A DNA stretch of 49,115 bases from Klebsormidium nitens (lineage: Eukaryota; Plantae; Klebsormidiophyceae), in assembly GCA_000708835.1 (NCBI GenBank), contig DF237582.1, positions 1 through 49,115 on the forward strand, written 5' to 3'. Shown piece by piece: positions 6,255 to 46,291 of this stretch. The position numbers and the translations under genes are program-made. How positions within the stretch are numbered: position 1 is the stretch's first letter; every line of letters starts with the position of its first letter. A model generated the notes under the pieces. The model was not told the DNA's origin. It worked only from the letters and a program-made list of their open reading frames with translations, and did not search any database.

Positions 6255-8312
6255 TTACATTCGGTTGATTACTTGTCCAAGAAATAAGAAGTTTACAGCA
6301 CTGATTACGAGCTTGAGTCGTTGGGTACTCAGAACAGTCGAATCTGCAATAAGATGGGTATCCCAGATTACTCTTTGTGTCTACATCATAACCATCACGG
6401 TAAGGTAAGTAGGACAGAAGGATACCACGAAAAGAGCAGAATCAAACATGCATCAATCCTGATTTTACTTACCTGGAAGAAGACGGCGAGAAACAAGTTT
6501 GAACCAGCCAAGACGACTAGGAGCAAGGTCACGTAGTCAAATGGAGACAACCGCTGGTTGACCTGGGCAGAAGAAGAGAAGAAGAGATCAGAGAGTGCGG
6601 CTATGAGAAGATACTTGCAAGAGAACAAGACTTAGCAACTTATACCGCTTGAAAGATGCCATAGATTGGATCATTAGGCTTTGGATTGTCACAAGTAGGT
6701 CAGCAGAGAAACATCTAGAGACAACCCTTGCTGCTCTTCGCTTTGCAACTCACATTCTCTCTGTACCAGTAGAAGCCACCATACCTGCAAAGCAATTAAA
6801 AGAAACACTTCAAGCTTGATCACCTCCAAAATTGCTAGCAAAATTGAGCACGTGCCTCGGACAATTAAGAGTTGTGGTCAATCTCAGTGTCTTATTCAAC
6901 CAAAGTCCCTACTTGGAACATAGATACAATCTCAATGAGACAATGGATAGCAGCACTAACTTACAAGAGAAGCGGCGCTGCAAGAATTGCAGGTTGTAGC
7001 CAGCTGGGTACGGAGCCCGACTGCGCAACCACCTGGCCCGTGGCCTCCATCACTGTGGCGCCACTCTCATTAGCCACAGCTTCGCCAAGTGCACGATCAG
7101 CATTAAGAACTTGGCCAAGAAAACTTCCAGCCAATGCAACACACACCAGCCTGAGCGACGCCGCACTTCCTCTTCCGCCCCCTGCAATCTCTTCACCAAG
7201 GGCATCTAAGCGAAGCCTTGCCATCGACGCGTCAAGGTCAAAGTCTGGGCTAACTGCACTCGACAACGCATGCGCGGCCTCCCAGCTAGCCGTTTGCCTC
7301 AATTCTGAGATGTCCTGCTGCAAGGCCTCAACATGGTTTGACTGGAACGCAGCTTCCTGTCCAGCCAACATGAGTGTGATGTTGTGTTTACGCCATACCT
7401 GGTGCAAAGCCCAAAAAGGGTTACATTCTGAACGTAAACCACACGCTCGCACTCATGCAAGACTTCTGAAACATGAAGTGGACAAACACCTATCACTGAG
7501 TGGACTTATACACCTAATGCTGCCTTCACATCACTGGGAAAATCTTTGCCATCATGCGTGCAGGCAAACCTATATTTCTTACCTGCCAGAGCAGTTCGGC
7601 AGCATCAAAGCCAGCGGGGCTAGTCTGGTAAGCCTGTTGTTGAAATGCGACTATTTCTGACTGCAAAAACCCAGCTTGATGAAACTGCCCGCCCGCCAGT
7701 CTTCCGTCTTCAGCTTTCCCTGAGCTAGTAGGGTTGCCAAACGAGAGTAGGCAATTGACTGCAAACCTGCGTTGTCCTGTCGACAACATTCTCTCGCCTT
7801 TCAGGCTGCCACTTCCAATTCTGCTTGAATATTCTTGCCGCTGTACTTGCAACCTGCCAAGTGGCACAGCAAAGTGACTACAAGACCCACTTTCCCCATG
7901 TTCTCTCCAAGCAATTTCACGATTACTCACCAGATGGCCTAGGGCAAACTTTTGGGAACAATGTAACGCCACGATGTTGGTCATTTTTCTATTTTGATTG
8001 GTTCCAGATACCCGTGGTGGAACTAGTAGTGTCTTGTCAAGTGGTAGACTTACTCAATTGTAATCAGCGACGGAAAAGGGGGTATGATAGACATAGCAGC
8101 TTACTCTCTCTGAGGAGCTGTTTTGCACCTGCAGGCACCAATCGCCGAAGATATGTGATCACTGCAAAGCACAATGACCTTTCGTTGAGTCGCGACTCGC
8201 AATTATGCTCTCCTCGTGAGGGTACTTGTATGACTCTCATGAGACAATCAAGGGTGGGGCAACTCGAAGGAAGCATCGGATGCCATTGCAGGCGCAAAAG
8301 CAGACCGGCCAA
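6255..8312 (-). CDS. Unknown, probably chloroplast-targeted protein with C-terminal hydrophobic helices; first and last exons uncertain
   Basis: Phase-compatible exons join as ...RRFAVNCLL...AELLWQ|VWRKHNITL...SWLQPAILAAPLL|LYGGFYWYREN|VNQRLSPFDYVTLLLVVLAGSNLFLAVFFQ|TQRVIW...*. The start codon is not resolved, so 8312 is only an upper estimate. Confidence 0.6.
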
Positions 8313-8591
8313 CTGGCGAATGGCAAAGCAGTCGGACTCTCTCTCTGGAAATGGGTGGCTGACATTTGTCCTGCCCGTGGGGCTTTATCTGCTCCCTGCT
8401 TTCGATTTTCACACCGGCCGCCGGGAATCACCGCGCGCGGCGCTGTGCACTCCCAAGGCGGCCCGGGACGGTTCGGTGCGGTGAATCGGCGACATCCGTG
8501 TTTCCACAAATTTAGGGGTGAGTTTATTGGATTTTAGACCTGGCAGATTTTAAAAGGTGATCTTGCGGCTTGCCAGTTTAAGTTCAGTAGA

Positions 8592-8944
8592 GTATGTAAT
8601 TTCACTAGTTTCAACTGCAACGTAGGCATGACATCATCGGTACCTACGGTGAACAGTGTGGCGGTACGCTACCCTGTCGAAAATGGTCGGTACCGTGCAA
8701 TGTTCAACCGGGCACTCGATTGCAGGGAGACGGAGTGCTCGGGGGATGTTAGGGTTACAAGAGGGCAACCGACTGATCTTGGTGGGGTTAGTTGGGGGGT
8801 TAGGGTGGGTACGGGCGGGCTATGGCGGAACGCCTTAGGGTTCGTCAAAACCCGGTTACTGCTATCAGTTTGACCTTAGGGTTTTAGGTTTGGCAGGTCC
8901 TTAACTATGATGACGTTGCAGTTGAAACTAGTGAAGTTACATAC
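8592..8944. mobile_element. MITE-like element with 32-bp terminal inverted repeats
   Basis: GTATGTAATTTCACTAGTTTCAACTGCAACGT (8592-8623) matches the reverse complement of 8913-8944 with 1 mismatch. The interior is non-coding and rich in TTAGGG-like motifs. No clear TSD. Confidence 0.65.
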
Positions 8945-31694: not shown

Positions 31695-34249
31695 TCAATC
31701 TCTTGCCAGACGGATGAGTGGTCCTACTGTCGTGGACACGGTAAAAGCCTTGCCAGAACCTAGCAGGTCGCGAAGGTGAAACCGCATCCCTAAGATGGAG
31801 TACCGCAGATTTTTGCGGCTCAGCTCCGTGTGCAGCATCTCGCGGTACTTGCGCCGGGACAAGTACCCAATCAGCTCCTTCCGGCCCTGCAGCAGCAGCT
31901 CAACCGTCAGCGCCGGCATCGCCACAAATGGCTTCAGCTCGATGAAACAGGCCGAGTGCATCCGCATTCTCGCATACCACAGAAAGAGCCCTCTCCGGGC
32001 TTATGACCTTCTTGGTAGGACGTTCGCAACCTGTGAATGGAACCCGGTGGCAAGTACGTGTGAGCGCTTGCATGGGATGCGCTGGATGCTCCGCGTCACC
32101 TGGACCACGCTCTTGACGAGAAGGCCCACGTTGGGGATGGCGAACCAGAAGGCGGTGCTATCCGCCAGCTGGCGCACCAGCAGGCCCGCCTGGAGGAGCA
32201 AAGACACATGGTACTCGCGCACAGGCGGCCGGCCTGGTCCAGACAGCAGCCGCCACTGTGTGCAGGAGAGCCGCAAGAGCGTGAGTAAGCGCACATACGA
32301 CAAGAGGCACCAGCGAGACACGGCAGCTGCAAAGGGGAGGACACTTGCTGGTGCCTGCTAAGCATGAGCCTCCAGAGGTCTCGGGCACGTCTCTTCCTTG
32401 CCTGGACAGGAGGCAGCACCTTACTGCAGGCCCCCAATCGAGTGCCCTGCCTGCAAAGTGGGCCATCCGAGTGGCCCTCTGCCGCCGCGCCGTGTCCGGT
32501 GAGCCCTCACCAGGAGTGCATGGCTGATGCCGACCTCCACATGGCCAGGAAGCACGCTCTCCAAGAACCAGTCAAAGACCACCACGTGTTCTGGGGGGCT
32601 CTTGGACGCCGCTTGCGCCTGCGCCTGGCGGACCTGCAACGGGAACGCGGCAGGGCCCAGTGTCAGGACAAGAGCCGGCATAAGGGCTGCATGTAGGTGC
32701 CCCTTGCAGCGGAAGAAGGGCTCAAAATTGCGGCCTCGCTGGGGCAGGAGAGGCAGTCACAGCGGTCAAAACGATCATCATAGATGTAATCAGCTGGACA
32801 CTTTTGATGTCCCTCCTGAACGCTTTGTGTCCTACTGCCAATTCGGCAAGAAACCACGAGTCTAGATACAAGTGCAAGCGATTCGGCCAGTCATGAGCAA
32901 GGGACCCGAGTAACGCTGCCAGTGAGCAGGTGTGATTCGAGAAAGACAAGCTCATCCAAGAAATATCATGTCCAGGACGTGCTGTGCCCGGAGTACTGAC
33001 TTGCGCAGTGTAGTCATCCCACAGCATGATGGCATAGTCGTCCCCGGAAGTGACCAGCTTGAACAGGCGGATCCGTCGCCGATGCTTGAGCACCTGAGAA
33101 GAGGATAGGCAGGCTAAGCAGGGGCTCCCTGGCACCAATTGTTGACCAGTAGACGAACCCCCCACTCCAAGCGTAGGCAAGTACAAGGAGTTCCATGAGA
33201 AGACTTTAAAGAACATGTCCCCTCGTTCTTTTTTAAGGTCAAGGATATTGGTCTACAATCTCGTTCGAAAAGCCCACTTACAGTTGAGAAACCCAGCAGG
33301 CGCCAAGACGACGACTCCTGAGCGGTAGCATGGAAGGGACAGCATGAGATGCGGTAAGCTGTTGACAACAAAGACTGCGGATCACTCCTAAACTGTGGCA
33401 CTGCTGTCGTTCCCTCCTCCCTACCTCGGCCTCCCTGTCCACATCGGTCCTGTTCTTCACAATGCTGTAGACCTGCGTCCTGAGGATGACCGGCAAGACA
33501 TCGACTTTCTGCAGCGCCCAAAGGGAAAGGGGTTAGGGCACTGAAAAGACAGCGGCCGCCAGGGGCAGGGGGCAACTCTTCCCATGCCGCTCTCTCTACA
33601 GGAAATGGTTGTCCAGATTAAGGAGGGCAGGTATCGCAGCACCGAGTGTCACTGCACACGCACATGCTCACGCAATTGGAAACATCGCATACAGGTCAAC
33701 AAGTCCTGAGTCACTTCAGCACTGGTTCCAGCAGCGGTTCAGAGCATCTGTCATGAAGTTTGTCAAGAAGTAGCTTACTTTTCGAACTTTTGGAAATTGA
33801 CTATGAAGCAATTGAATCGCTGCTAACACATCGCTCGGTTGCTCCTGAAGCTCTGTGGAGCCGTCCTCCCCATGACCGCCGAGCATGGCCCCTGGCTGCG
33901 GGGCACTTGCTCCCGCATCGCAGCATGCTGCTGCGTCGTTCTGAGAGTGGGTTGATGATACATCTGGGGTTGCTTCAAAACCCCTGCCTTGTTTCTCAGG
34001 CTGTGTGGCGCCACCACTCTGACGGGCGCTACCTATGTTGCTTGAGCTGGTGCCGTCAAACGGAACACCTCCTTGCTCGTGCAGGTCGTGCAAGGAGGTG
34101 CCCCTTGCTTCTTGTTGTGTCCCGCTGCTGCTCCTTTCCCTGGCCTGGTGCTCCTGCGTAAGCTTCAGGAACTTGTTGAAGTCAGGCCCCCCACCACCTG
34201 CGGTGGCCCGCTTGCCGCGCTGCCCCGGGCCAGCAGACAAGCCCTTCAT
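31695..34249 (-). CDS. STK19: STK19-family winged-helix DNA-binding protein (multi-exon; start approximate)
   Basis: Exons give LHSQFPK|VDVLPVILRTQVYSIVKNRTDVDREAE, IRLFKLVTSGDDYAIM, LLQAGLLVRQLADSTAFWFAIPNVGLLVKSVVQ|GRKELIGYLSRRKYREML and LGMRFHLRDLLGSG, matching recalled STK19 motifs. Confidence 0.8.
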
Positions 34250-34858
34250 GCCGACCTACGTGATCACCACCGCAGCCTGCGCATCAGGAGCTCAACTGGC
34301 TCAAAATCCCAAAGAGAACATAGGCTCCGCCCTGGCCCCTTCAGCCTCGTGCTCCAGCTCCTCTTGCAACCTCGATCTGACATACCGTAATTTTAAAACT
34401 TACAAGATACATATCATGTGCGTCGTTGCAGGGATCATCCTCGCTGATTCGGCCCCAATTGCAGCATATTGCGGCTTTCCGATACAAAATCTACCGAAAT
34501 GACTTGCCCGGGAGCCGTCGCAATTCATACCAAAATTTGGCAGCAGGTGTGTGGCCGGGAGTCGCATATGATTGCGTTCTTGACTTGCATACTGAACAGA
34601 TTGTAAAAGCTGGTGGTACAAATTCAGGTCTAAACGGCGCGGCGGTGAAAGCACATGTGAAGAAATCAGGGCTATGAATGTGTGCAGCTCTGAACTTGGA
34701 AGACAGCACTACGGTAGCTGTTACTGTCACTGTCGCAAAACTATCAAAGCATTCTCCTTTTGTTAGTGTCTCTGCCCCGCCAAATAGGTGTAAATCACAC
34801 GCAAACACCTGAAGTCATCAAAGTCGCGACTCTGACAGTGGTTACGGGCTGTGGTTAG

Positions 34859-34921
34859 GACAGTGACAGTGACGCTGACAGTGACGCCGACAGTGACGCC
34901 GACAGTGACATTGACAGTGAC
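34859..34921. repeat. 12-bp minisatellite (GACAGTGACNNN) x about 5
   Basis: Units start at 34865, 34877, 34889, 34901 and 34913. The inverted motif ACTGTCACTGTC lies near 34722, with further GTCACTGTC copies near 35453 and 35720. Confidence 0.85.
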
Positions 34922-35046
34922 CGGGGCTTCACTGTGACATTAGGGTCATGTTGCAAACCTGTGACGGTTCGCGGCAATCGACTAGCGTTTTGTTAGGGTT
35001 ACGTCATTCTCTGCACAAAGGAAGATCAAAATGTGCAGCATAGTCG

Positions 35047-35437
35047 TCAAAAAGTTTTGATGGAAGCAACGACGAGAAGCAGCGCAAGCAGCGTGCTTGC
35101 AGCCAGATCATTTAGTTCTCTTAGAGCCGAAGATGCTGGAAAGCCCCTAGACAACCTTTCCAGCAGTAACGATGAACATACCTGCTTCACCTTCTGCTTC
35201 ACCTTCCGCAGCTCCTCGTCGGCCCATGGAAAGATCTGGTTCGCAAGCCCTGGGTACTCATCCTGTGAGGGGAGCACCCGAGCACCCGACCACGTGGCAG
35301 GAAGTACCCCTTGCGATCGTCCTTGAACCCCGCCTGAACGAGCATGATCCCAACTGGAAGTTGATGCAGGTACGAAGTCCGGAAGTGGTCGTAGATCCAA
35401 CGGCCGAGCCGAGCACTCTCGGCTTCTTTGGCGCACA
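35047..35437 (-). pseudogene. Crypton/NDC10-II-like tyrosine recombinase fragment, frameshifted
   Basis: Two frames join once one copy of the 8-bp duplication AGCACCCG (35273-80, 35281-88) is removed, giving ARLGRWIYDHFRTSYLHQLPVGIMLVQAGFKDDRKGYFLPRGRVLPSQDEYPGLANQIFPWADEEL. This fits the recalled GRW-x-Y-x-LP-x-AGF-x-YxLPR-x-IFPW pattern. Confidence 0.7.
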
Positions 35438-36022
35438 GTGACATTAGGGTTCGTCACTGTCAGTGACAACCGGGCAGAGTCCTTTTGGTTTAGTGTATGT
35501 AGACACTTTCTCTGACCCGGTCCCCATCTGTACCGAGTCCGTACCGCATACTGTACGGTAAAAGCTGACAACTCTGACAAAGTTTTAATCGAAGGACCTG
35601 ATCTGACATTGTGGTTCCACGCGGATACCTTGAGAGCCAATGATCCCGCGTGTGAAACGTTTTCACACTATTTGAAGCCTGAGACACTAACAAAAGGAGA
35701 ATGCTTCGTCGTACTTGCGTCACTGTCAGCAGTATGGGGGCACTTCAACATGCAACATGGTCGTCAGTAGGTGGCCATCCCTGGGCCAGTTTTCATCCCT
35801 CGCAAGCGTTGCGTATTCTGCTTGACGTCAAAAGTCCTGCCTAGCAGTTGTGATTGATAGCGCAGCGCGGTGCTGAGTATCGTCTTTTTCCAAAGAGCAC
35901 CATAGCCTGGAGTCGGCCGTCCCTGTGTCAGATCCAATCCTGTCTGTCAGAAATGCAAACTATGGACTCAGCATAGACAGCATTGCAGGCGGCCCTCTGA
36001 GGGTCTGCACAAGGGTGTTCCC

Positions 36023-39000
36023 ATGAAGCCCCCATCGGGGCCCAAGCAGGAGGGATTGGCCAAGCCGGAGCTGACTGTCTCCCCTCCCGTCTCTCCCCCC
36101 GGCCATTCTGTGCGGCGTTCGCGCCAGTCGCAGGTTTCCCCACTGCAGGCCTCCCCTCACCTCCCACCAGGCTCCCGCAAGGGAGGGGTGCCGGGCGATG
36201 CCGAGCGCCCCCCCACCAAGAGCAAGGCTCCAGCTGCCGAGCTGGCGGAGGGGCCCAAGAAGGTACGGCAGCCCCTGCTGTTGAGCGCTGGCTCCAAGGG
36301 CAGCCCCCCGAAAGGACCAGAGCCCCTGCGGCGCGCCATTGCGGAGTGCACGTCCGGTGCGGGGAGCCGGGGCGTGGCGGCGGACCGCGTGCTGCAGGAG
36401 TACCTGAGCCAGGCCGCCACGTGCGACCTGGCGTACGATTTGCTGCTGGAGCATGCGCGCACCGAGGTGGCGCGCAGCCCGGGCGTGGTCCTGGCCACCA
36501 TCCGCCTCCTCAAGCGCATCCTTTTCCGCTACCTGCCCAGTGCGGGCACGCTGGAGGCCATCGACGCCTTCTGTGCGCAGCTCATGGCAGAACTGAATGA
36601 GGCTGCAGCGGCCAGGCACACGCTCTCGGGGCTGGGCCCCCTCCTGGGCCCCAGGTCAGAGGTGGCGGTTAGCCCCCTCGGTGGCTTCTGCAAGGACTCT
36701 GCAGCGGTGGTCCGGTCACTGGCGTTTTTGAGGGCGTTTGTGGCGCGGCAAGTGGGGCCCATCAGCAGTACCCAGAGGCTGCCGCGTGGCGGGGAGGTGG
36801 CGGGCGAGTCGCGTGGCAAGGGCAGGGCAAAGGTTTCCGAGGCAGCACGGCATGAGGCGGTGCCCGTGGGGCCCGAACACAAGAAGGTTGGGGCGCAGGA
36901 GGCGAGGGACTTCCTGGAGGAGGACGTGTTCAGCTGGCGGTGGATCCTGCGGCCCAGCGCGAAGGGCGGGAAGAAGCAGCCCGCGTGGGCGCCGTCGCCG
37001 GTGCTGCTGGGGAGGTGAGCGCGGGAGGCGGAGGCATGAGGGAGATGCCGCTATGCTTGCGGAGACACTTGTGCAGCTTCTGAGGGAGTGCGACAAGTCC
37101 TGGCATTCCCTGAACTGTTTGCAGCCTACTCCGTGGCAAGCCCCTCATGGCCCGAGTTCTGCAGCGTGACTGTAAGAACGGCCCGTCGCCAGACCAGCTG
37201 CATCAATGTCTTTCGACGGCCTCTCATGCCCCTCCCTGTTCTCCCTGCAGTGGGGGCCTGTCCCGCCCCATACCCCGTCCCGTGCGCACCCTGACTGACT
37301 CGGGTGCGGCTGCCCTGCTCCTCCAATCCACGCCCCTTCCCCAGAGCGTGAGCAGCGAGGTTCGCGCTGGCCCCAAAGCTCAGCTGGCGTCCGACGTCCC
37401 TGCTTTGAATCAGGCCTCCCCCCTCGACCCCGACACCCGCAGGCAGACCTCTGCCGCCTTGCCCGCTGCGGACGCTGCGCTGCTGCAGTCACACATCCGC
37501 ACCATTGCGGCCGCCAAGCGGCGGCCCGAGATGGGGCCGAGGAGCAGCGTCGAGCTGCTGAAAGGCACTCCGGCCAAGCGTCGCACGCGCCCCTTGTTCC
37601 ACTACCGGCCATACGCAGAGCAGCAGGCCCTCCGGCTGAGCGATGCTGAGATGGCGGACGTGCTGGCCGCCGTGTGTGCGGACTCTGCGCCCCAGGGGAA
37701 GGGCCCTGCGCCGCCCGACCCTGGCGTAGGGTCCCCGGCGGATGTGGCGGGCAGCGTGCTGATCAAGCTGCTGCTGGACCTGTACTGCGCGGGGCCCAGC
37801 CTGGCGGGGCCGCTCACGCTGCGCCTCCTGCTGGAGATGCTGGCTGCTGCAGCGCCCGCGGTGCGCTGCCGCGCGTTCGACCTGGTGCTCAACCTGGGGG
37901 TACACGCGCACCTCATCGACCCGGCTGCCATGCACCCGGACGACGCCCCACCGCCGCCGCACGATGCCAGTTCTCCCGCCAGGCCCGGGCAGGCGAACGG
38001 CGCAGGGGGCCGCGCTGCGGTGGCGCAGTTTGAGGAGTGGGCGGTGGCGCTGGTGCGCGAGATGCTGCTGGCGCTGGTGCAGGCGGGGGAGCGGGAGGAG
38101 GCGGTGTGGGTGGCGGGCCTGAGCTGCCTGCTGTACTATGCCGCGGATCAGGGCCACATTTGTCGCCCCAAGGTGGACGGCCTCGATGTGCGGATCCCGG
38201 CGGCCCTGCTGGCCATGAGCCGGCGCCACTGCTGGGCCGATGGCGTGCACACCGCCCTGGTGCGCCTGGCTGTCAACCTGCTGTACGACGGGGGGAAGGG
38301 CACGGGCGGGAAGCGCTCGGAGGGCGGCCTGAACGGGGTCACTGCGGAGGGGCGGCGCGCGCCCACGCTGGACGTAAAGCGGCTGGAGGCACTGGGCGGA
38401 GTCGCGTGGGTGTGCCACGAGTACGCGGAAGGGCGCTCCAGGGAGGTGCGCCGGAACATGTTTGCGGTGCTGTTCGACTTGGCGGTGCTGCGGTACAGCC
38501 AGCAGTGTGCAGACGAGCGGCGCGCTCCGCCGGGCGAAGAGGAGGTGTGCGCAGTGGCCGCCGCGCTGGGCCTGGCCGACGCGCCGGAGGCGGTGGTGCT
38601 GGGCTTCAAGCTGGGCCTGCCAGGGACGGCCGACGCAGTGCGGCAGGCCATCATGGCCGCCATGCAGCGGGACGTCACCTCCGGCCGGCTCAACTCAGAG
38701 GTGAGGCAGGACGTGGGGAAGCATGAGGAGTTTGCTGTGCTTCTTGCTAGTAACGACGACAAAGCAACTCGTGGGTGTTGTTACATTGGCGACATAGTAG
38801 CCGCTTTGTTAAAAGTTGGACAAACTTCTGAGGGGCGCTCGAACGTCCGCCTTTCTTTCCTACGAATATCGTGTCGTCCCCCCGTCCAGCCTGTTTTGTC
38901 CGCTCGTCCCGCGAAGGTCGGTCCCCTTCTTACTCCTCCCTCTCTGCGCCCCCCCTTTCTCCTGCAGCTCCTCGCTGCGGTCACCTCCACTTTGGACGAC

Positions 39001-40942
39001 CTCGCGCTGAGCAGTGCCCGCCCGTCCGCGGCCTTCGCCCCCCAGCTGGCCATCACCGCCGCATCGGACCCTCTCCTCGCACCTTCCGGCTCCGCTCGCT
39101 CCTCCCCCTCCCGCTCGTCCCTGGGCGCGAGCGTCGCTTCCGAGGCCGCGGGCCAGCCGCTGGCGCCCCCCTGGAGACGGCTTAGCCAGGGCAGCGCTCC
39201 CAGCAGCGACCCTGAGGCGCTGGCCACGGCGTGGGCTACCCTGCGCGCGCTCCTACTCTCGCCCCGCGAATCCGACCGCATCCACGGCCGCTGCTGGCTG
39301 ACGGAGCTCCTAAGTGGGGGAGCAGGCACACGAGAGGCGGCCGGCCTGCGACCACTAAAGGGGTCTCCCGCGGAACGCCTGAGCGCCACGCTGCGGGCGA
39401 GCCTGGAGCGGCGCCAGCGGCAGCATCGCCCCTCCTCGTCCGGCGACCCTGGCGGGCAGGCGAGCCCCGGGCCAGAGAGCGGCGCCGAAGAGGAGGCGTG
39501 GGCGGGGGTGCAGCTGCTGGGCGAGCTGCTGCAGTGCCCCGAGCGCGAGGTGCAGGCGGTGTTCTTCGAGGTGGTGGACCGCGCGCTGCTGGCGGCCGAG
39601 ACGGACGGCGCTGCGGCGAACCCCGAGCAGGCGGCGGAGGGGGCCGTGGCCCTGCTGAGTGCGGCGTGCCAGCTGGTGGTGGAGGCCAACAGCGCAGACA
39701 CGCCCACCGTGCTGCGGGTACGCGCTGCCCAGCAAGCAATGGCCAAGCGGGGGGGCCCCGTGTGGGGCTCTCCTTGTCCCATGATGCGGTCTGCCCTGAC
39801 AGAGTCTCTGGATTGCACTGCCCCACTGCCTGTCCTTGATTCCTCCATCAGAGCTGAACATCCGACAACAACTCGAGCCAACCTGCTCCCTGTCCATCCG
39901 CAGATGTGCCACCTCCTGTTCCGCCAGTTGTGCGCGCGCAGGCCCCTCCCACTTCCCCGCGACTCCCCTCTGGAGGGTCCCCTTCCCGCCCTCCTCTTGG
40001 CTGGCCGCCTGCTGGCGTCGCCCCGCCTCCTCGCGCGCCTGCCTGTCGCCCTCCTGCAGTGGCCCCTCCTGCGCCTGCCGGCCACCCCCGTCGAAGGGAT
40101 CGCGCTCACCGCCGCTGTCGGCAGCCGGGGCGGCAGCGGCCCGGGGAGCAGCCTCAGCGACGTCAGGGCTGCCATGCTGCTGCTGCTCATCAGCAGGTGA
40201 GGCCACGCGGCGCAAAAATGCAACCTGTGGATTCGTTGGAGGAGACGGCCGAGATCGCTTGACGGTCATTCTTGCAAAATTAGGAGGCGGGGAAGGGCTC
40301 TCACCCGACTCGTTGCCGCCTCTAGTACCGTGGACACGAGCACGCTGCCTGCATGCATATTGTGGGGAGTGTATGAGGGCGTTCTCCTGCTCCTCTCCCA
40401 CGTGTCTGCTCGCTCTGCTACCCCGCTGTCAGGTGCGAGGAGAGCGTGGCGGCGTTCCAGGCGGTGGGCGGGGCCTTCTTCGAGGCGGTCCTGGACGACC
40501 CCGACCCGCGGCTGGCGCTCTACGTCAGCACGTTCCTGCTGCGCCGCATGGCCCGCCAGCAGCCCGACGGGTACCGCACCGCACTGCAGCGCCTCGTCTT
40601 CCACGCCCAGCAGGTCAGCCCGCCGGCTGGCGTCTGGACCTGGCTCTGCCTGCTTGATATATGCCGGGTGCTGACTGACCGCTGCAGAAGTCGCCCGGGG
40701 TGGGCGCTCGGTCGTGGGCGGCAAAGAGTCGTCTCCTTCGTGCCCTTGGCGGCTACTGTGTCTGTGCTGATTGTGCCCGTGTGCTGCTGATGCGGCCCCC
40801 GTGTCTTTGGCAGAGCAACAACGAGAAGCTGCTCGAGAACCCGTACCTCCAGATCCGGGGACTTCTGCGGGAGCAAGCACAAGCTGAGGCTGAGGGGGTG
40901 CCAACGGAACGGTTTGATACGGAGACTGACGCAGAGGCTTGA
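36023..40942 (+). CDS. Large conserved uncharacterised plant protein (Arabidopsis At3g12590-like), multi-exon
   Basis: Motifs GPEPLRRAIAEC, EYLSQAATCDLAYDLLLEHA, RPLFHYRPYAEQQALRLS, SVLIKLLLDLY, RAFDLVLNLGVHAHL and SNNEKLLENPYLQIRGLL. TGA at 40940-40942. Orthology is from memory only. Confidence 0.75.
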
Positions 40943-44293: not shown

Positions 44294-46291
44294 CTAGAAT
44301 GCAACAGCTGGGGGAAGCGCTGCGATCCTCTGCCCGAAGTTTCCTGACCTCTGCCTCAACACGGAGACGGGCGAATGAGGCTCCGACAAGCATGAATGCT
44401 CATTGTCAGATGAGTTCCCCCCCTCCGCATGGGACTGGAACTTCTTGAATCCAAAACCGTTGGGCTTCTCTGGCTTTCGTGACACTTCCTCTGCCTCATG
44501 CATGCCACTGCCTGACAGCGCCAGGCCAGAATCTGCCATATGTGTGCCACTACCCGATGGTGCCGACTCCCCCTCATCTCTGCCAGATTCCCACTCCCCT
44601 CCTTGTTTCACACTAGTTGCCTCCTCATCAGACCGCGTGTCGCTGTGGCCTGAGGAGGAAGGCAGTCCAAACCTTGTGCTGCTGCCATGCTCCTCCCCAG
44701 CCTTGCCCGCATGCTCCTTCCCAACAGAGGAGCTGGCACTCTGCTCCCTCTTCTCTGCCCCCTCCCACACTCTCTGCCCCTCCTCCTGCAGGGTCTGGCC
44801 CAAATGTGACCGCTTGCGCTTCTTCGGAACAGCCCTCACATCCACCTCCTCATCGGCTGCCCTCTTCCCAGGTCCCCGCTCATTGTAGCCCACAGCGTCC
44901 AACACCTCCCTGATCATGTCCCGCAGCCTCTCCTCCCCGTCCCCCACCACTGCCTCCCTCCACGACTTCCATGAGGCCTCCTGCTTAGACGCCGCCGCAG
45001 CAGCTTCCCTCTGCAGCTGGAACTGTCGCTTGGAATGCTTCAACCGCTCCTCCCGCTTCAGCTTCTTGTGATCACGCTTGGACGCGCTGTGGCGCACCTC
45101 CGTGGGGCCCTTGCTGCTAATGCCAGGCTGCATGCTGAGGTGGGGATCCGCAGAATCCTGGACAGCAGCCACCTTGCATGCCAAGGAGCAGAAGCGCATG
45201 GCGTCGAGCAGGCTGCGCCCACACATCTCACCTGCACATACAAACGAAGTGACATTCGTTTCTGACAAAATTTCAGATTGATAAAGCATATACATCAAGG
45301 AGATAATCTCCGCAATTAGATATCACATGATCCTCTTGAGTGGCCATCCAAAGGACAAACGGTCATTCTTGATCAAGCCAGGTACAATCAGCATCTTTGG
45401 TAGGCCTTCAGATCTTGAGAGCCTCTCTCTTCTTTTGTCTAAACTCAATACTCAGATGTGTGTTCTTAACACATCCGCAATCTCAAATCTCCTTTATCAG
45501 TGCTCATTTTCTGTCGAGGTTACAGCAACATCCTTCAACATGCAATCAACAGAAGCAGTGTATTATGAAACAAATCGCACGCAGCTTTGCTGATGGTGGT
45601 CAGCGCGCTAGGTACTGCAAAGCCCATCAGTGCGGGCAACTTACAGAAGTGATAACCGCCTCTCCACGGCTGCGGAGGCCTTCTCCCCTTGAGGAAGAGA
45701 ATCTGCATCAGGGGCATGACTGTCAGAGGAGAGAAGTGGCAATGGGAAAACACCAAGTTTCTGTCCAATCCATAACAATGGAGAAGACCAGGAGCATAGC
45801 AACCGCGATGAGCAAGACTTCTGACCGTCAATGACTAAAATGCACCTTTGTACCCAAAAAGCCCCTTTGTCCCTACCCTGCAGAAGGCCACAACATAAAT
45901 CCAAGTGCCTCAGCCAGAACATGACTTTGTGTACCTTTGCAAAGTGTGAGGTTGTTGCAAAGATTACCTTGCTGCCATTGATTGTGTACTGCTGTACACC
46001 CTCTGTGTTGACCTGGTGGATCTCATTCACCCTGACCGCATTGTTGTGGCTGGCACGCCTGATCTGCAGGATGTCATGGCCTCTGTGGGAGGAATCCACG
46101 CAGAATGTGCATAGCGCATCCTCATGGCAGTCCAAGCAGTAGAAATTCCTGTCTGTCTTGTGGGAAAAGCCCCCAGTGGAGTGCTCCGGGCAGGGCGTAA
46201 AGAAGGGAGCATCCAGCGCCCCAGTCAGCCAAGCAGGACCCGCTCTCTCCACTGACAATGCTCCATTCATTTGCAAATTGGCCCCTGGCAT
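44294..46291 (-). CDS. PLATZ: PLATZ zinc-binding transcription factor with long low-complexity C-terminus (3 exons: 46291-45968, 45702-45645, 45231-44294)
   Basis: WLTGALDAPFFTPCPEH...NFYCLDC...LCTFC...HRGHDILQIRRASHNNAVRVNEI...VQQYTINGSK|ILFLKGRRP...YHFC|EMCGRSLLDAMRFCSLACK. Splice phases are compatible. Confidence 0.92.

Follow-up and report, generated by a model that had tools for sequence, protein, structure and literature searches.

A frame-shifted exon and intron, very probably the decayed remnant of a CryptonF-like element or gene copy, in the streptophyte alga Klebsormidium nitens

Results

Layout of the locus

The window (the whole 49,115-nt stretch of Klebsormidium nitens DNA analysed here) holds a short coding remnant of a Crypton-type tyrosine recombinase. 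It lies within a 1.8-kb gap of low GC content (~52%) between long open reading frames (ORFs). The gap is bordered by the start of a minus-strand ORF at 34249 and by GC-rich plus-strand ORFs from 36023 on, which places the relic between apparent genes. The parts of the relic and its immediate surroundings are as follows.

35445-35600, minus strand: noncoding stretch 5' of the exon, present in diverged form at the P0004 locus
35432-35182, minus strand: Crypton-type recombinase coding remnant, split across two frames
35432-35280, minus strand: exon part A, first frame, from AKEAESARLGRW to LPRGRVL (tblastn with P0005, P0004 and P0001; family HMM)
35280-35182, minus strand: second frame, from RVLPSQDEYPGL to KVKQKVKQ
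35182-35272, minus strand: exon part B proper, from PSQDEYPGLANQIFPWADEEL to KVKQKVKQ (identity to P0005; family HMM; correspondence to QIFPEID of Ndc10)
35273-35288: perfect tandem 8-bp duplication, two copies of AGCACCCG on the plus strand, shifting the reading frame
35182-35205: 12-bp tandem duplication, frame-preserving, that doubles KVKQ at the exon's 3' end (Tandem Repeats Finder [TRF], 35182-35206, period 12, 2.1 copies, 100% matches)
35011-35181, minus strand: retained 171-nt intron, GT...AG (splice signals; KVKQ followed by R in P0005)
34999-35010, minus strand: stub of the next exon (an Arg codon, two more codons and a stop)

Several other parts of the window carry coding signals. 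ORFs of 331 and 1,017 aa at 36023-40200 on the plus strand (70% GC, GC3 above 0.8) belong to no Pfam family; presumably, they form a host gene that is divergent to the relic and has its start ~580 bp away. Two minus-strand ORFs at 44294-46291 match PLATZ and B-box zinc fingers (E=9e-7 and 5e-6) and probably belong, as exons, to a single PLATZ transcription factor gene of plant type; together with the K. nitens paralogue described below, they support a green-lineage origin of the DNA. Plus-strand ORFs of 262 and 219 aa at 6872-8484 lie in a low-GC stretch and have no Pfam match. We also considered a link between TTAGGGT motifs near the relic and the TTAGGGT cluster at 8749-8876, and on reading found the two regions to be unrelated.

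One exon in two frames

Database searches used the two frame pieces separately, with no joined peptide submitted; a read-through with X at the break served solely for local alignment display and for the tree. A word-index protein search with part A, in which candidates were limited in length, returned a single protein, P0001, a JGI protein of 106 aa that is 69% identical and is uninterrupted across the window's break. An alignment of P0001 with the two window pieces was the query for a profile search of 1.8 billion proteins, which at E<=1e-3 gave 74 relatives. Among these is P0005 (GenBank GAQ91375.1, KFL_007750010), a protein of K. nitens itself that carries the UniRef label "Ndc10 domain-containing protein." Residues 116-195 of P0005 are identical to the window reading on both sides of the break, except for a 2-residue insertion private to P0005. 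Part B agrees with P0005 residues 166-195 at 29 of 30 positions, and the two sequences are identical across all 72 columns kept for the tree.

Searched against the window by tblastn, intact homologues match in two frames; the two matches are collinear and abut precisely at the 8-bp duplication (joint E=5e-24 for P0001), which lies within a period-8 tract spanning 35272-35289. We scanned all stop-free pieces of the window's six-frame translation with a family HMM of 603 positions, derived from 24 long relatives; it found part A at E=7e-22 (positions 235-288) and part B at E=1.7e-6 (positions 284-310), and the next best piece had E=4.8. The initial annotation, made from the DNA letters, had proposed that removal of one octamer restores the frame. 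This is borne out both by P0005, which is uninterrupted across the break, and by the two pieces, which adjoin on the family HMM. It had also read an in-frame duplication in KVKQKVKQ, which the TRF result confirms. Period-8 duplications occur at three loci in 49 kb, against about one matching position expected per shuffle, so this duplication is unremarkable by itself; it is meaningful because intact homologues read through without it. The 12-bp duplication, 67 bp away within the same exon, is private to the window copy: P0005, P0004, and P0001 each have a single KVKQ or IKQ.

Under the simplest account, both duplications would be small slippage or end-joining events that followed the death of the copy, and it is such an origin that we infer for them. 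The target-site duplication of hAT transposons is 8 bp long, and the octamer duplication is perfect and tandem. These are the points in favor of the earlier suggestion that it is the footprint of a hAT-type transposon, inserted in the exon and later excised. However, that suggestion is argued from size alone, and the other perfect two-copy duplications in the window (8, 8, 11, 12, 13, and 16 bp) show no preference for 8. Moreover, the surroundings of the site showed no hAT sequence, and the junction bases are unaltered, whereas hAT footprints usually change them. Given the nearby 12-bp duplication and the recurrence of duplications of 8 to 16 bp, slippage or end joining is a simpler explanation than a hAT footprint, which we regard as improbable.

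A retained intron and the extent of loss

An intron had been offered as the alternative reading of the continuation NDLAASTLLALL, and this is the reading that stands, based on good splice contexts and a conserved Arg after the acceptor. The donor is CAG/GTATGT, with its GT at 35181-35180 on the minus strand, and the pyrimidine-rich acceptor ends in CAG, with its AG at 35012-35011. GC content is 47% in the intron versus ~60% in the exon, which retains exon-like GC3. P0005 continues from KVKQ directly into RNLTG, and the first codon past the window's acceptor is AGA (Arg). Because P0005 reads R immediately after KVKQ and the window has Arg immediately after the AG, NDLAASTLLALL is intron read-through, and 35181-35011 is a retained intron. 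It follows that the fragment derives from a genomic DNA copy, not from processed mRNA.

Beyond this intron, family homology (minus strand) stops ~10 nt into the next exon, and neither P0005 residues 196-648 nor family HMM positions above 310 have a counterpart in the window. No further exons were found in the whole 49-kb window, either by tblastn with all 74 relatives or with the family HMM. The single HMM locus thus represents an isolated exon with an intron stub, amounting to ~13% of the protein. On the 5' side, the ORF of P0004, a translation of unspliced DNA, can be aligned to 35600-35283 if gaps and stops are allowed, and the stretch at 35445-35600 probably represents the element's preceding intron.

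The state of the exon bears on whether the gene could still be alive. The exon protein is identical to that of an annotated K. nitens gene over ~80 residues, and its GC3 is still exon-like, as might be expected if a Crypton-derived host gene were still alive here and the frameshift were a sequencing or assembly error. Yet no other exon of the family lies within 35 kb on one side or 14 kb on the other, a stop follows after three codons of the next exon, and two separate duplications set the window copy apart. The location, a 1.8-kb low-GC gap between long ORFs, also speaks against such a gene. We consider a living gene highly improbable.

Catalytic residues

In full-length relatives, the catalytic residues occur in the order Arg (L.RGE..R), Lys (GKTNK), His-x-x-Arg (THAGR), and Gly-Arg-Trp, with a Tyr nine residues on. 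The window exon carries the end of this series: a Trp codon at 35399-35397 and, at W+9, a Tyr (in TSY) at 35372-35370. Columns conserved in at least 90% of the 74 relatives are Gly, Trp, Tyr (W+9), Pro, Gly, and Arg, and the window retains the Trp and the Tyr (W18 and Y27). The Trp of GRW, which the initial annotation took to be catalytic, is therefore conserved. The Tyr that directly follows it (in WIY), which had been named as the nucleophile, is not conserved among relatives; the conserved Tyr sits at W+9, in TSY, and is the likely nucleophile. Presumably, the conserved Trp and Tyr are the equivalents of Cre W315 and Y324, and we take the spacings (23 residues from Arg to Trp and nine from Trp to Tyr) to match those of Cre. 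The first Arg, the Lys, and the His-x-x-Arg, which lie upstream of this exon in full-length relatives, were not found anywhere in the 49-kb window with the family HMM.

Family assignment through relatives

A Pfam search had been proposed as the check on the peptide, and on the window itself it came out negative: neither of the frame pieces, nor the 197-aa ORF, matches any family, NDC10_II included, even at E<=10. P0001 has no Pfam match, and for P0004, an intact exon-only homologue, NDC10_II is the sole match (E=0.1, 12 bits). The fragment spans just ~80 of the 317 NDC10_II profile positions. P0005, in contrast to the window pieces, matches NDC10_II (PF16787) at E=9e-19, with 68 bits against a cutoff of 26.3, over residues 110-247, the exon included. 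The same family is found at E<=0.01 in 55 of the 74 relatives, and GCR1_C as well in 6 of the 74, the architecture of CryptonF. A 12-sequence family profile searched against the PDB found yeast Ndc10 (4ACO, residues 426-500, E=5e-9), with the QIFP..D segment within the match; PDB searches that used P0074 alone or a three-row profile of the exon gave nothing meaningful.

Since the window pieces have no Pfam match of their own, the family assignment is transitive, though secure, through relatives, and by this route the resemblance to NDC10_II put forward in the initial annotation is supported. GCR1_C is absent from the window (family HMM and tblastn), and Pfam finds none in P0005. A retrotransposon of the DIRS/Ngaro type finds no support here: no reverse transcriptase occurs in the scanned ORFs of the window or in the Pfam tally of the 74 relatives.

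The closest named relatives beyond Klebsormidium are proteins of Closterium species, also streptophyte algae. Seven of these (P0014, P0018, P0019, P0023, P0026, P0031, and P0033) form a well-supported clade of NDC10_II-type recombinase-like proteins from several Closterium genomes, which suggests that Crypton-like genes are widespread in streptophyte algae. The short tree contains a supported split that separates Klebsormidium and Closterium from the GCR1_C-bearing sequences, although it is of low resolution and, with 72 columns, does not reach deep relationships. Searches with P0001 of prokaryotic genome contigs and of metagenome contigs yielded no confirmed locus, and the ESM Atlas returned for P0001 just unnamed bacterial clusters with low recognition, which are uninformative.

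Repeats around the relic

The relic is set among several repeats.

34724-34772 and 35681-35729: arms of an inverted repeat on either side of the relic; perfect 26-bp core at 34747-34772 and 35681-35706
34859-34921: tandem array of a 12-bp unit, ~5 copies, GACAGTGACGCC-like
34930-34946 and 35434-35450: 17-bp direct repeat, 16 of 17 positions identical, bracketing exon, intron, and stub

Outside the 26-bp core, the inverted-repeat arms are just loosely similar. In a pattern search of the window, the core has two matches against none expected by chance, and it occurs nowhere else in the window. GTCACTGTC motifs, related to the unit of the 12-bp array, lie at 34726, 35453, and 35719 and, together with the array, show this motif to be clustered around the relic. 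The 17-bp direct repeats flank the fragment, not an element. Their upstream copy overlaps codons for NVT that the K. nitens paralogue reads in a different frame, a possible sign of another 4-nt indel or, alternatively, of intron sequence in the paralogue's gene model.

The simple model of a decayed Crypton leaves the inverted repeat with its perfect 26-bp core unexplained. The ~1 kb from 34724 to 35729 might instead be a non-autonomous terminal-inverted-repeat element, or a palindromic rearrangement, with the Crypton exon and intron as cargo, in which case a whole Crypton would never have inserted here. The core itself (perfect over 26 bp, unique in the window, with no chance matches expected) is consistent with such a unit, as are the GTCACTG-type motifs that cluster just inside both arms, the array at 34859-34921, and the presence of just one exon of the gene. 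On the other hand, the unit occurs just once in the window, its arms have no identified target-site duplication beside them, and arm similarity is loose beyond the core. In addition, GTCACTG-rich sequence beside the exon seems to be common to the K. nitens paralogue and P0004 and may thus belong to the Crypton gene itself; the inverted repeat, the array, and the direct repeats could all be repeat-rich intron sequence of that gene. We judge a cargo origin unlikely. The narrower proposal of a non-autonomous mobile unit, with GTCACTG-type subterminal repeats, that captured the recombinase exon and intron is quite unlikely. If true, it would mean that a transposon in a streptophyte alga carries part of another transposon's enzyme gene.

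Discussion

We conclude that the locus is very probably the decayed remnant of an intron-containing CryptonF-like (NDC10_II-type) element or gene copy, inactive through truncation and frameshift. The comparisons establish its homology, the break in its frame, its missing parts, and its intron. On this reading, a single exon of a tyrosine-recombinase gene survives, together with the intron behind it and the very start of the next exon. In an intact protein, such an exon would contribute the end of the catalytic domain, with Gly-Arg-Trp and the nucleophilic Tyr, and then LP...AGF...YFLPR...IFPW. No recombinase can come from the window copy, because ~87% of the protein is missing, the frame is shifted, and the next exon ends after three codons. 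We infer that the relic once belonged to a whole element at its present spot.

The K. nitens paralogue P0005 supports the earlier proposal that Crypton-like elements exist or existed in this genome. Both sequences end the exon at KVKQ. In contrast to the window, P0005 is a 648-residue model with N-terminal regions for the catalytic Arg and Lys and a long C-terminal part. It has one KVKQ, has no 8-bp duplication, and carries its own 2-residue insertion. The P0005 gene model is without the His-x-x-Arg segment, and a fully intact K. nitens copy is thus not among the sequences compared.

By itself, the relic matters little, being a small dead fragment of a documented transposon family. It is ordinary because Cryptons are known in green algae and because a fuller K. 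nitens paralogue is already in GenBank and UniProt. Among the papers we searched, none deals with Cryptons in Klebsormidium or other streptophyte algae. The modest value of the locus is as a further indication that NDC10_II-type (Crypton-like), intron-containing recombinase genes have existed, and been decaying, in streptophyte algae, and it is a clean case of decay through small tandem duplications.

Among known systems, DIRS, Ngaro, and PAT retrotransposons also encode a eukaryotic tyrosine recombinase whose end motif is Trp ... Tyr. They differ from the family described here in that relatives of the window fragment carry NDC10_II and GCR1_C instead of a reverse transcriptase. Ndc10/Cbf2 of Saccharomyces cerevisiae (CBF3 subunit A, 4ACO), a Crypton-derived kinetochore protein, has the QIFP..D segment that the window retains. 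However, Ndc10 has been domesticated as a host protein and its catalytic site is not preserved (PMC3212892), whereas the family of the window exon keeps the Trp and the Tyr, and the behavior of its members is that of transposon genes.

The nearest parallel is CryptonF. The initial annotation was right about the family but described Cryptons as mainly fungal, oomycete, diatom, and animal elements, whereas the green alga Chlamydomonas reinhardtii already has active ones: Cryptons were listed for it by Kojima and Jurka in 2011 (PMC3212892), and their transposition in it was observed by Lopez-Cortegano et al. in 2023 (PMC9977147). The relic differs from CryptonF elements (tyrosine recombinase plus GCR1_C), such as CryptonF-1_cRei of C. 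reinhardtii, in that it covers ~13% of the protein, is without GCR1_C and element ends, and derives from a gene with introns. It resembles CryptonF in that its more distant full-length relatives carry NDC10_II together with GCR1_C. It has in common with CryptonF an NDC10_II-type domain and the active-site end formed by Gly-Arg-Trp ... Tyr and, like CryptonF-1_cRei, it resides in a green alga. The insertions of CryptonF-1_cRei are gene proximal (PMC9977147), and the relic, likewise, adjoins apparent genes.
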